A stretch of 64,000 nucleotides of DNA from Podarcis bocagei. Its lineage: Eukaryota. Positions within the stretch are counted from its first letter, which is position 1. Every line of letters starts with the position of its first letter. Both the position numbers and the translations under genes were made by a program. Under the pieces are notes generated by a model. The model saw nothing but the letters and a program-made list of their open reading frames with translations, ran no database searches and was not told the DNA's origin. Shown in pieces: positions 6,919-16,076 of this stretch. Location: assembly GCA_964188305.1 (NCBI GenBank), contig OZ076888.1. The stretch is one strand, 5' to 3'.

Positions 6919-7934
6919 TAGAATATGAAGTAGACATGGCTAGCCTGAAAACTTGTGCCATATCAAATCTGAGTACTGTAGGTATTACCCATAGCCAGAA
7001 TTAACTGCCCACCATAGCTATAAAATGTGATGGCTAACCAGCTATAAAACCAAGACCACCCTATCCTCTCCCAGCTTCCAATCTGAGGCAACACCAGAAC
7101 TGAAAAATTGCCTTCAGCTGCGTACACACCATACATTTAAAGAGCATTATTTTACCCCAAAGAATTCGGGAAACCAGTTTCTGAAGCGCTCTGGGAATTG
7201 TATTAATGCAAGGGTCAAACTACAATTCTCAGGATTCCTTGGATGAAATAATGTGCTTTCTGTGTATGGTATGCCGGCAGCCCTAGTCGCTTTTGTTGTC
7301 AGGGCATTTTGTTTTGTTTGAACAGCAGCAGATCATTATTAACATGTCCTGAACCTTGACAATCCTGCAGCATTTCAAGCCCCAATGGGATAGAGAAAGA
7401 GCAGCAACATTTGCAAACATGCCGAACAGCATCAAAAGCGTACAAACGCTTTCGGCACGTGCCCCTGGGAGCAAACTTTTTGCATTCACCTGCAACCTAA
7501 GGCTTGATCACACTCCGAAATTCAATATTTATTGCCACATGAAATGTGAGAAATGCTTTCACTCCAGCAGAAAGTGACATTACTGCCAAATGGCAGGTGA
7601 TCACAAGGGCTCCATTTCAACAGTGCACCACATACCAACAGACTCGCAGCCGCGTAGCATCCAAGACTGCCGAACGTATTACAATTATTGCATCTAATTG
7701 CACATAAATACTTCAAGTGAAACATTTTCAAATGACAGCCTCTGCAAACTGAACAGAACTGCAATAATTATCGAAGATGCTTTATGACAACACAGAGGTT
7801 AGCCAAGACATAACTCACCCATGGAAAAATTGTCTTGGCAGCAAAGTTTCAGTTAAATATTTCATCATAATAGCTACATGAAGGCTAAGGGCCATACGCG
7901 ATAAGACACCACTCATGCAATTACCAATTGCAGC

Positions 7935-7956
7935 TTTGCTGTTGTTGTTGTTGTTG

Positions 7957-8009
<53 letters not shown>
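7935..8009 (+). repeat. Compound microsatellite (TTG)n(TTA)n
   Basis: Seen directly. It explains the poly-L and poly-N ORFs in the track. Confidence 0.95.
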
Positions 8010-8012
<3 letters not shown>

Positions 8013-8551
8013 TGCCTTTCTTCTAGAAAAAATGGTGCTGGTACTCACCATGAAGTACCCTTTTTGGCCAACCAGCTGTGGGTGCTGCTGGGTGGGCTGG
8101 GCTGTGGGCTGGGCTTGATGCAGGGCGAGAATCTGCTGAGTGCCCAGAGCTGGACTCGCCACAGCCGGGAGACATGGCCTTCATCCTCTGTGCCATCCAT
8201 GAGGCCTTTGAGGAAGCTGGAGTCCTCTTGGTGCTGCCTGGTCTGGCTGCCACCGAGGTCCCACCCTGCTTGCTCTGCCTGCCAAGCGCTTTCTGCCGAC
8301 CTCAGAGCTGGCTGAATGGTGGCAGCAGGTGCAGTAGCAGCCTGGAAGCTTCCTGAAGCTGTGCCGCCACAGGAGGAAGACAAGGAAGAAGCCCCACTGC
8401 TGGGGCTGGCAGTGCCAAGGGGCCCACTGCCAAGGACATGTGAGAAAAGGTGGACCCTTCTAACACACTTTCTTTAGAAGCCAAGATTTATTTTTTGGAG
8501 GGGGAGTGTCGGTACTGTGTACTGGTGAGTACCATCATAAAAGAAGCACTG
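8010..8551. mobile_element. Non-autonomous TIR (hAT-like) element with captured gene fragment
   Basis: Termini CAGTGC(C)TTT...AAGCACTG. Exact inverted subterminal 12-mer TGGTACTCACCA (8039-8050 / 8523-8534). Degenerate 8-bp TSD TTATTATT / CTATTACT. GC-rich interior. Confidence 0.7.
8135..8370 (+). pseudogene. NUDT19-like Nudix-box exon fragment inside the TIR element
   Basis: PELDSPQPGDMAFILCAIHEAFEEAGVLLV, then after a frameshift LPTSELAEWWQQVQ*QPGSFLKLCRH. This resembles my recollection of vertebrate NUDT19 (LPGEVAFRICAxRExFEEAGVLLL...L..WR.RV..DP..FL.LC.H). It has a frameshift and a stop. Confidence 0.72.
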
Positions 8552-8700
8552 CTATTACTATTACTGTTGGAAAGCATGGCCCCTGGTCCATATTGGGCTC
8601 TTGGCAGGGAGAATAGATGGACTTTAACCTGTTCTCCCAATATGGGGTCTCAATCGAAACTGAGGCTGGTGCCTAGCAAACTTAACACTAGTTCTAGTTA

Positions 8701-8818
8701 CAGGTAGGTAGCCGTGTTGGTCTGCCGTAGTTGAAACAAACAAACAAAATTCCTTCCAGTAGCACCTTAGAGACCAACTAAGTTTGTTATTGGTATGAGC
8801 TTTCGTGTGCATACACAC
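8701..8818 (-). mobile_element. Penelope-like short repeat (truncated hammerhead motif)
   Basis: Minus strand GTGTGTATGCACACGAAAGCTCATACC...GTTGGTCTCTAAGGTGCTACTGG...CAGACCAACACGGCTACCTACCTG. 9-bp direct repeat TTCTAGTTA at 8692-8700 and 8819-8827. Nearly identical to 54020-54147. Confidence 0.7.
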
Positions 8819-10469
8819 TTCTAGTTATTTAGCCCTTTACTTAGTAGCCCACCTTAATGTACACAATCTAAGCATTTTGAAGCACATCAGAACTATATGG
8901 GTTTTGTACGTTAATATTATTTATAACAAATACCACAAGGAAAATGGGAAAGTGTTGTGGATAGACATTTATTTTATGATGATTTGAAATCTGAACTTGT
9001 GTGTTGGAAACAGAGCTGAATATTCTTTCTGGCATGGTTTTAGAACTTCCTCTAGATATGATTAAGAAGCAGGTTTGTCAGATGGCACCGCTTTCATCGT
9101 AGCACATGCTGAGCTGCTAATGAAACCATGGGGACTGCAGAATTTTAATCATTTGCCGTGTCCTACCAACCTACACAGAGCTGTGTAATGCATCTCCTGC
9201 ATGGAAACATTTGCATTGTACCTGTACATTGTACAGAAGGCTGGGGGAAAGGCTTAAAATGGAAAGCTTACAACATACTATGCTAAAGGGTGAGCCATTT
9301 GATACAACAGCAATCACTGCCTCTTATTCCCATTTTAAGCTCCGAAGACACCTTCCTGCAGAAGACATTGGTATTTTCAGTTGTGGTCTGTACCTAACAC
9401 AAATAAAATAGTGGGGTTCTGGACAGGCACAGACAATGCTTGCTCTCATTAACAGAAGTCATTTTGTCTTTTCCAGGTAAGATCTTCTTCTGCACCACAA
9501 AAATGTTGCAGAACTTCACATTCTGGATGCCAACCCATATGTTCGTATATGGAAGGCAGCTTCCAAGAATAACACATTCAAGTTTTGCAAACAAGCAGGC
9601 TCCAGCAGCAACAAGAAATGCACCACTGTAGACAAGATGCCTCAGAGACAAATGTAGTGCATGCCAGATCATGCATCTCAGAACAGGGATTCCCAAATTA
9701 AGTTTCATGAGATCTTTGCCTAGCTGCCAAGCACACTGACACCTTGATGTGGGATTTTCAATACTGACATATGCTGTCTTATTCCTGCACAACATACACA
9801 GACTATCAGGCTGCCATAAACAACCACATCAATGACTAAAGATCACGCAACCAAGACTGGGGTTAGGCAGTTTTGTTAGAATAACTACTCAAACTGTAGG
9901 CTTAGTGCAGCGGATGTGGGGGGTGGGGGAGCTACATTTATAAACATTTGTTTTGAACAATTTTGGCAGCATTAGGCATGCAAAAGTAACAGTGTTCAAA
10001 TGTTTGGAGGCACCCTCTGCACTCAGAGCCTGGCAGAATATCATGGAAATCAGAATTAACCTTTAGGCACCCCTCTTCAACACTAAACATTTGTACAGGC
10101 AAGTTAAAATATCATATAAGTATAAGGTAGCAGTGCCAGCCCCTGTAGGCAGCTTCATAGGCATATGGCTGAGGAGAGGAGGAACATGAGATGCAAAAGA
10201 CAAATTAACATGGTCACAAGAGCTAAGACTTTCCCCCTTTACCTTGATTCACCCCAGCCTCTATTCTGGTGCTAAACATCGCTAAGATTTGTGTTCCCAA
10301 CTGAACCCCAGCTGGCAAAGCATCTCATCCCCAGTTAGAAAGGTAAACAGCTAAGCAGACAGGTTGGTTCAGGGACAGGGCAAAGAAGCCAGGGTAGTCA
10401 ACCTTCCTCTTTTTGAGATCATACATATCCCAACTTCCCAGGTGATAAAGCCCAACAACAACAAACAGT

Positions 10470-14382: not shown

Positions 14383-15592
14383 CTATTCCACTCTTTGCTT
14401 CTTGCTCAAGAACCTGTCCATAGTCTGCTGCTTCATCCGCCTTTTCAGCACCTCCCTGAAAGGCGACATGACACTCGTATCAAAAATGTTCCCAACGTCA
14501 TGTGCCACGTGCTTCTCAGGGTGGTGCTGCTCTGCAAAAGTCTGCACCTCCTTCCACTTCAGGCAAATGTCCCTCAGTTTTTCGGAGGACAGCCGTTCCT
14601 CAGTTGCTTCCTCCTCTTCCAGTGAGGCCTGCTCCTGCACAGCCTCTGCCTGCAGTTCGACCAGCTCCACGGTGGTCAGCTCATTGTCGTGCTCCTCCAC
14701 CAGCTCGCAGACGTCCTCCTCCGTGACCTCCAGGCCCATGGTCCTCTCCAAGGCAACAATGTCCTGCACCACTGTTGACTCTGGTGCATCAGAGTCACTT
14801 GGTGCCACACAGTCCGGCCACAGGCTGCGCCAAGCGCAATTCAAATTTCTCTGGCTGATCCCGTTCCAGGCCGTGGTGATCATCTTCAAGCAGGTGACGA
14901 TGTCGAAGTGGTCCTTCCAGAATTCCTGCAGGGTGATGGTGGTGCAGTCAGTCACCTCGAAGCATCGCCTGAAAAGCTCCTTGGTGTAGAGTTTTTTGAA
15001 ATTGGCGATGACCTGCTGATCCATCGGCTGGAGCAGTGGCGTGGTGTTAGGCGGCAGGAACATGATGTTGATGAAGCTGAACTCCTCCAACAAGTCCACC
15101 TCAAGGCCTTTAGGATGGGCAGGAGCATTGTCCATCAGAAGCAAAGCCTTCAGCAGCAGGTCGTTGTCCAGCAGGTACTGCTTGACAGCAGGGCCAAAAG
15201 CAAGATTGACCCAGTCCACAAACAGCACACATGTGACCCAAGCCTTGCTGTTGGATCGCCACATGACACTCAGCCGCTCCTTGTCGATCTTGTGTCTCTT
15301 GAAGGCCCGTGGGTTCTCTGAGTGGTACACCAGCAGGGGCTTGATCTTCAGGTCGCCGCTTGCGTTGGCACAGAAGAGCAGGGTCAGACGGTCCTTCATG
15401 GGCTTGTGGCCAGGCAACTTGGCCTCCTCCTGTGTGATGAAAGTCCTTTTGGGCATCCTCTTCCAAAACAGCCCAGTCTCGTCGCAGTTGAAGACCTGCT
15501 GTGGAACGTAGCCCTCCGTCTTCACAACCTCCAGGAACTCCGCTGCAAAGTCTTCAGCCGCAGAAACATCAGAACTGGCAGCCTCTCCATGC
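14383..15592 (-). pseudogene. Tigger transposase catalytic domain, N-terminally truncated
   Basis: Uninterrupted frame of about 400 codons from HGEAASSD, with VFNCDETG, LLMDNAPAH and QPMDQQVI (DDD triad). The CENP-B/HTH N-terminus is absent, and the track start at 15639 is a TTG inside the tandem repeat. Confidence 0.9.
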
Positions 15593-16076
15593 CAGAAAAA
15601 AACACACAAGCTTCCAGATTCTTGCAAACCGCTCCCCAACTGTTCCCCCAGCCACCCAGCACACAGAAATTCAAATCCAGATTTTTTTTAAAAAAAGAGC
15701 AGAGTGGCCCAATGGTCACAGAAAATCATAAAAATGCAGAAAAAAACACACAAGCTTCCAGATTCTTGCAAACCCCTCCCCAACTGTTCCCCCAGCCACC
15801 CATCACACAGAAATTCAAATCCAGAATTTTTTTAAAAAAAGAGCAGAGTGGCCCAATGGTCACAGCAAATCATAAAAATGCAGAAAAAAACACACAAGCT
15901 TCCAGATTCTTGCAAACCCCTCCCCAACTGTTCCCCCAGCCACACAGCACACAGAAATTCAAATCCAGAAATTTTTTTGAAAAAACAGCAGAGTGCCCCA
16001 ATGGTCACAAAAAATCATAAAAATGCAGAAAAAAACACACAAGCTTCCAGATTCTTGCAAACCCCTCCCCAACACC
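15593..16076. repeat. 144-bp tandem repeat, about 3.3 copies, inside the Tigger element
   Basis: CAAGCTTCCAGATTCTTGCAAACC recurs at 15607, 15751, 15895 and 16040 (spacing 144, 144, 145). Confidence 0.95.

Follow-up and report, generated by a model that had tools for sequence, protein, structure and literature searches.

Capture of gene fragments by cut-and-paste transposons is common in plants. Carriers there, such as the Pack-MULEs of rice and maize, hold GC-rich pieces of host genes between their ends, often as mosaics from several sources, and have been amplified by transposition. They belong to Mutator, with 9–11-bp duplications and long terminal inverted repeats (TIRs), and they exist in thousands of copies with many cargos that are often transcribed. 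Ds-like elements (hAT MITEs and ordinary hAT derivatives with internal deletions) keep terminal tens of base pairs with clusters of subterminal motifs, lack a transposase and need an autonomous partner. The outermost bases of Ac, hobo, Hermes and Charlie follow the terminal motif YARNG. In animals, gene-fragment capture of this kind is already known, mainly as single-copy events without later movement. Tan et al. (2021, Nat Commun 12:4280, PMC8277862) surveyed 100 animal genomes and described 370 Pack-TIRs, of which 208 are hAT and four are multicopy, with an entry of 0 for the one lizard genome in their table (anoCar2). Among their multicopy examples is Pack-hAT-N8_XT of Xenopus tropicalis, which carries a piece of the CAPSL 5'UTR. 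Template switching, in gap repair or at a stalled fork, has been proposed as the source of such cargo, and their filter for young captures asks for a unique parent of at least 90% identity and 80–120% of the cargo length (PMC8277862). A Pack-TIR in their sense also has a parent free of flanking transposable elements and a cargo that is no retrocopy.

Here we describe a 542-bp unit within a 64-kb stretch of lizard DNA, which we analysed at its full length of 64,000 nucleotides and call the window. Taken as a whole, the explanation that we moderately favor is an old, non-autonomous hAT-type element whose interior has been replaced by foreign DNA, the centre of it probably being a piece of NUDT19. 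The unit resembles the animal Pack-TIRs in being a non-autonomous, hAT-like TIR element with a few hundred base pairs of host-gene-like interior (PMC8277862). In a Pack-TIR both termini retain 10 bp or more from the ends of a single repeated TIR family, around 100–5000 bp of DNA that is not transposon-derived; here 8016–8056 recurs in about 100 contigs per sequencing run and the 3' end, from 8506/8511, in 4–6, and the interior measures 450 bp. Unlike the Pack-TIRs of that survey, its parent-like copies reach 81–93% over blocks only, and its interior is mosaic, built on a backbone that was inherited (PMC8277862). The locus also differs from Pack-MULEs, having one decayed cargo and, in one RNA run, no transcription of its own. 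Like Ds-like hAT derivatives it keeps terminal tens of base pairs with subterminal motif clusters, but its interior is not a deletion product, since the canonical interior of the family (62–77 contigs per run) differs from it from 8057 on.

Ends of the element and the family they belong to

The initial annotation had outlined a unit running from CAGTGC to GCACTG with an inverted subterminal 12-mer, and this outline holds. The unit begins with CAGTGC at 8010 and finishes with GCACTG at 8551; the 12-mer TGGTACTCACCA stands at 8039–8050 on the plus strand and at 8523–8534 on the minus strand, with no third match in the 64 kb at one mismatch or fewer (0.35 expected). Inverted similarity between the two ends is beyond chance. 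The first 60 nt align to the reverse complement of the last 60 nt with a local score of 36, whereas shuffled ends give 14.3 ± 2.8 and reach 36 in 0 of 5000 trials; pairs of 60-mers at the same spacing across the window reach it in 0 of 4000. The ends are nonetheless asymmetrical, as 12 nt of the 5' end are absent from the 3' end. Every GTAC motif of the unit (8041, 8055, 8512, 8519 and 8529) falls within 47 bp of one end or the other, where about 0.2 would be expected in 93 bp given a window background of 2.2 per kb, and the 450-bp interior contains none. Both ends read CAGTG(C), with outermost bases fitting YARNG, and the GC content of 0.55–0.63 within the unit stands against 0.32–0.45 in its flanks.

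The element sits between simple repeats. A compound (GTT)n(ATT)n microsatellite (7942–8009) adjoins the 5' end, and its last 8 bp, TTATTATT (8002–8009), form the candidate left copy of a target-site duplication; the candidate right copy, CTATTACT (8552–8559), lies within a decayed (TTA)n tract. An 8-bp degenerate duplication had been claimed here. The two 8-mers are indeed identical at 6 of 8 positions, but both flanks are (ATT)n-like microsatellite in which such a match is expected anyway, and the candidate duplication is uninformative. It is compatible with a hAT insertion and is no proof of one. Assembled contigs of all three organisms compared below break inside the microsatellite. Rfam returned nothing beyond a CrcZ match at 7872–8002 (E 0.006; 21 bits, gathering score 95), which we set aside as a low-complexity artefact on the same microsatellite. 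To the right, some 140 bp from the element, lies what we take to be a squamate SINE-like repeat (8690–8830, plus strand), with a core that includes GGTAGCCGTGTTGGTCTG, CAGTAGCACCTTAGAGACCAAC and TATGAGCTTTCGTGTGCAT.

The 5' end belongs to a large repeated family. We aligned Logan contigs of organisms A (run X1), B (X3) and C (X13), and raw RNA reads of organism B (X23, about 12% of the run read), to 7500–8700 at 80% likeness; for the 5' end the contig comparison covers 8016–8056, with 7930–8016, including the outermost 6 bp of the unit, masked. Position 8033 is covered by 90–102 contigs per run. Their summed depth is 29,226 in X1, 13,160 in X3 and 7,006 in X13 against single-copy depths of 45, 13.9 and 8.4, and this ratio of 645–950, although not a copy number as such, suggests a family of hundreds of copies. 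About 90% of the family depth has A at 8033, where the element has T. No other difference from the majority is listed for the 5' end, so the retained end lies near the family consensus, though the cargo has decayed. The 5' terminal region (8010–8056, plus strand) closes where this high-copy match does, at 8053–8056: after 8056, 62–77 contigs per run continue unlike the element, and further contigs depart after 8053–8055. The divergent continuations past 8056 have one common consensus, beginning TGTTACAGTAAGTGCC, which we take to be the usual, canonical interior of the family.

The 3' terminal region (8506–8551, minus strand), which holds the inverted copy of the 12-mer and three of the GTAC motifs, is a low-copy variant of the family end. 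It is matched by 4–6 contigs (at 8535) with a depth 6–10 times single copy, and loose contig ends occur before 8506, 8507 or 8511. Across the public contigs the 5' end exceeds it about 100-fold in abundance (about 100 contigs against 4–6), an asymmetry that is unexpected for a simple TIR family. Either canonical copies carry 5'-type sequence at both ends and the 3' end marks a small subfamily, or indels defeat the aligner. Joints from 8053/8054 to 8506 are present in contigs of X3 and X13, which means that other loci carry the same pair of ends. The proposal that this is a small TIR element of a repeated lizard family is thus borne out by a 5' end found in about 100 contigs per run and by both ends joined in other copies.

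Judged from these letters, the element appears hAT-like, an assignment that rests on the YARNG-type termini, the clusters of subterminal motifs and the compatible 8-bp duplication; the GTAC clusters and CAGTG termini are the predicted transposase-binding parts. Neither the ends nor the interior recur elsewhere in the 64-kb window, which also lacks the canonical family interior and any hAT ORF that could represent an autonomous partner. Metagenome and viral contig collections held no other family copies. A transposase of another type is present in the window, a 417-aa ORF at 14383–15636 (minus strand) with a DDE_1 endonuclease domain (PF03184, E 3.3e-37) of the Tigger/pogo type; short matches at 144-bp spacing (about 15594–16050) mark a tandem array beside it.

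A mosaic interior with a Nudix-like centre

The 450-bp interior (8057–8505) is unlike the canonical consensus from 8057 onward, and contig matches divide it into two arms and a centre, all given here on the plus strand. The left arm (8057–8135, GC 0.63) and the right arm (8371–8505, GC 0.52) are each common to a few other elements. One of these, X13 record 12 (640 nt), matches 8045–8115 and 8388–8487 at about 82% and has 240 nt of other sequence between the two. The stretch 8045–8115 is matched with 12–13 differences (X1 record 3; X13 records 11 and 12) and the right arm, over 8388–8487, 8400–8457/8487 and 8430–8489, with 9–19 differences; besides X13 record 12, the records matching the arms are 3 and 7 of X1, 21 and 22 of X3, and 11 and 14 of X13. 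Elements with the same arms have other middles. The initial annotation had suspected that the GC-rich segments flanking the centre were further captures. They do recur in other elements, but at about 82% and around different middles they look like a backbone inherited in the subfamily, and a fresh capture is not supported.

Joints in the contigs link separate parts of this interior. They run from 8062 or 8068 to 8158, 8200 or 8400 (8068 to 8400 in two runs, 8062 to 8158 in X1); others connect 8241 with 8400/8403 and 8423 with 8463. The short ones, with sides of 20–44 nt at 80% likeness, could partly be spurious. One contig (depth 28.3 in X1 and 8.45 in X13) combines several of them: it passes from 8062 to 8200–8241, on to 8403–8423 and, after seven other letters, to 8463–8534. 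We read it as a second relative, shorter than this element, in which the same arms enclose a 42-bp centre piece that would encode EAFEEAGVLLVLPG.

The centre (8136–8370) behaves differently from the arms. It is matched at 81% over 8136–8241 (X1 record 4, 1966 nt), at 87% over 8138–8238 (X3 record 18), at 85% over 8172–8238 (X13 record 13, 1999 nt), at 93% over the 60 nt of 8158–8217 (X3 record 19) and at 82% over 8275–8370 (X3 record 20). The long contigs among these matches have about single-copy depth and are without match to the arms or ends. Parent-like homology is accordingly confined to 8136–8370, well inside the TIRs, and does not extend past them as it might in a duplicated gene segment. 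No second match to the cargo exists in the 64-kb window, so the parent is not in cis. One RNA read pair of organism B falls on the same two centre blocks, from which it differs at 12 or more positions; the first mate is on the minus strand. If the library is stranded as usual, this would be RNA in the sense of the plus-strand ORF, and with a single pair the expression of the parent is no more than hinted at. Our reading is that 8136–8370, nearly the 8135–8370 that the initial annotation had singled out for a protein search, would be the captured piece, that the arms would be backbone inherited in a small subfamily, and that the cargo was probably already aboard when the lineage last transposed. 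A 21-nt direct repeat (8157–8177 and 8365–8385, 81%) was considered as capture microhomology and rejected, as it does not coincide with the two borders of the cargo and GC-rich DNA can yield such a repeat by chance.

Two peptides had been reported from this centre, with a frameshift between them, and both are present: the frame of 8054 gives PELDSPQPGDMAFILCAIHEAFEEAGVLLV, and that of 8212 gives ELAEWWQQVQ*QPGSFLKLCRH, whose stop is the TAG at 8335–8337. Within them we define block A (8165–8239), which reads PGDMAFILCAIHEAFEEAGVLLVLP, and block B (8308–8370), which reads LAEWWQQVQ, the TAG and QPGSFLKLCRH; a -1 frameshift lies somewhere in 8240–8307. The centre is a candidate decayed coding segment resembling a Nudix box. 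Of the consensus GX5EX7REUXEEXGU it has the second half only, HEAFEEAGV, with R replaced by H and with no E eight residues upstream. A six-frame search of the window for [RKH]E..EE.G[ILVM] finds this peptide and nothing else.

The origin of the centre from NUDT19, a Nudix gene, had also been put forward, and only Atlas features and a comparison of peptides point that way. In the Atlas feature search the nearest entries are clusters of Nudix fragments, with scores of 0.88 and 0.86 that both fall under the 0.9 line and count as leads only; all ten matches that bear a family are in the Nudix clan. Human NUDT19 presumably reads PEDVAFRICAVREAFEEAGVLLLRP and then, about 20 residues later, LASWRDRVRQDPRHFLRLCAH. 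Against this presumed reference the element gives BLOSUM62 scores of 90 and 57 on the plus strand, in the same order and 23 codons apart, where the null maxima are 34 and 37 over 231 window tiles and 37 and 49 over 1000 shuffles; this too counts as a lead only. PMC5688067, a paper on the human NUDIX family, prints in its supplement four siRNA targets for NUDT19, which translate to TYHRHL, HVTVQP, KNSVVR and RRLAN; these agree with the presumed C-terminal part, so the presumed human sequence is probably sound. On the Atlas leads and the presumed NUDT19 peptides together, we consider an origin of the cargo from NUDT19 quite likely.

Confirmation from the sequence databases did not follow. A Nudix or NUDT19 hit had been expected of a protein search, but there was no match in Pfam (four ORF pieces and two core peptides), in NCBIfam or in the PDB by phmmer (100-aa and 44-aa queries), and phmmer against 1.84 billion protein representatives gave 0 matches at E ≤ 0.001. 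Word-index protein searches with the plus-strand ORF and the longer minus-strand ORF were likewise blank, their length window excluding full-length NUDT19 for the 100-aa query, and a full-text literature search for the peptide EAFEEAGV returned nothing. We estimate the in-frame match at about 25 aa and about 38 bits, for which significance is not attainable in a library of 2.4e11 residues. Because a match of about 25 residues is too short, the blank searches probably reflect a lack of power and weigh little either way. Two ORFs were dismissed as functional candidates: the 100-aa ORF of the plus strand has no homologue and crosses the border between backbone and cargo, and the 142-aa ORF of the minus strand has no homologue.

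Age and transcription of a shared insertion

The insertion is shared by all three organisms at the same site, as contigs run through the element and none skips it. Single contigs span 8027–8700 in X3 (691 nt, 10 differences) and X13 (692 nt, 13 differences), and X1 covers the stretch in two pieces with 0–3 differences. The left junction is never bridged, because the contigs break in the microsatellite. An empty orthologous site in related lizards would have appeared as a contig skipping 8010–8551, and none was seen in organisms A, B and C, which are closely related. Since they differ by only 0.5–2% here, the shared site gives a shallow minimum age only. In the alignments X1 differs from the window at 7646, 8298, 8401 and 8569, so the window comes from an individual distinct from X1; at 8569 all three organisms have A and the window has G, which is private or derived.

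Further signs of age come from the letters of the element. The ratio of observed to expected CpG is 0.26 in the centre and 0–0.14 in the backbone, and these low values, with the broken coding frame, are consistent with old, methylated, neutral sequence. The parent-like copies of the cargo, at 81–87% over 8136–8241 (93% over 60 nt) and 82% over 8275–8370, lie outside the bounds that Tan et al. set for a young parent, and the capture is therefore older than their filter admits (PMC8277862). RNA-seq coverage gave no sign of transcription from the locus in the one organism B run, about 12% of which was read: 17 reads aligned, 12 of them continue past 8056 into the canonical interior and so derive from other family copies, and no read lies on the flanks of the element. 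The initial annotation had pictured a family that is now duplicating host exon sequence. The element, which is old, common to three organisms, CpG-depleted and interrupted by a frameshift and a stop, gives no evidence of ongoing duplication. Our verdict is an old, non-coding, immobile, multicopy Pack-type hAT-like element with no sign of a function of its own.

Origin of the cargo and its meaning for the lineage

We weighed the preferred reading against explanations that dispense with one or other of its parts. The blank protein searches, the Atlas scores below 0.9 and the recurrence of parts of the interior in other elements would all suit an interior that is merely a GC-rich patchwork internal to the family, with no host gene involved; the Nudix/NUDT19 likeness of 8165–8239 and 8308–8370 would then be chance or an artefact of the presumed reference, as a short motif may arise by chance across about 250,000 scanned windows, and the 81–93% copies would be members of the subfamily. 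Yet the two peptide blocks match the presumed NUDT19 sequence on one strand, in order, at the right spacing and far above the nulls, and the siRNA-target peptides agree with the presumed human protein. The long contigs with parent-like matches (1966 and 1999 nt) moreover have about single-copy depth and neither backbone nor ends, and we judge a family-internal patchwork to be improbable. That the unit is no transposon at all, being instead a NUDT19 pseudogene or a fragment of a segmental duplication bounded by short inverted repeats beside a microsatellite, is in our view highly improbable. The unverifiable target-site duplication and the lack of an empty site in three organisms leave room for it, but its 5' end belongs to a family of hundreds of copies whose match stops sharply at 8053–8056, other contigs join this end to the 3' end, the inverted similarity and GTAC clustering are far beyond chance, and the parent-like homology is limited to 8136–8370.

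A capture in place deserves separate consideration, as gap filling gave rise to most animal Pack-TIRs, which are single-copy (PMC8277862), and as this element is fixed and old. An ordinary family member could have inserted here and had its interior replaced later by gap filling independent of transposition, in which case the cargo was never mobile. Against this, 57% of such cases have their parent within 15 kb (PMC8277862), and the 64-kb window holds none. Another contig joins the same backbone to the 42-bp centre piece, and more contigs combine the backbone with other middles, which argues that the lineage transposed after its interior had been acquired. We consider capture in place unlikely. 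The lack of a nearby parent and the presence of part of the cargo in a second element fit the rare multicopy, transposition-dependent class of Pack-hAT elements, whose members likewise have no parent nearby and share cargo between elements, and not in-place gap filling (PMC8277862).

We propose that an element of this hAT-like family kept its ends, about 47 bp at the 5' side and 41–46 bp at the 3' side, and had its original interior replaced by GC-rich foreign DNA, which could have entered by template switching during the repair of a post-excision gap or by switching at a fork. The central 235 bp (8136–8370) would derive from a coding exon of the host that contained a Nudix-box-like motif, NUDT19 being the most probable source, and would by now have decayed to a pseudogene fragment, broken by a single frameshift and a single stop; the outer interior would be the backbone of a small subfamily in which the middles vary between members. 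Capture probably took place in an ancestral element that then transposed, making the present copy a descendant and not the capture site. A second element with the 42-bp centre piece between the same backbone parts indicates that the capture predates this copy. Once loaded, the element may have been mobilised in trans by a hAT transposase recognising the CAGTG termini and GTAC clusters, and later internal deletions and exchanges may have produced the patchwork seen among its relatives. Insertion into the (ATT)n microsatellite would have preceded the split of the three sampled organisms.

By itself the element is a decayed, silent relic with no evident host effect. It adds a lizard case to the record of gene-fragment capture, one whose captured piece apparently moved together with its transposon and whose relatives have swapped middles. 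It may also be, though we judge this less likely than not, that a lacertid hAT lineage has repeatedly exchanged GC-rich pieces of host genes in a defined internal slot between its conserved backbone arms and then transposed with them. For a genome-wide study of this possibly capture-prone lineage, the present locus is one data point. The animal record so far consists almost only of single-copy, non-mobile Pack-TIRs, with four multicopy cases (PMC8277862). If this is true, the exchange-prone lineage would be a multicopy, many-cargo Pack-hAT system and a vertebrate counterpart of the plant Pack-MULEs.
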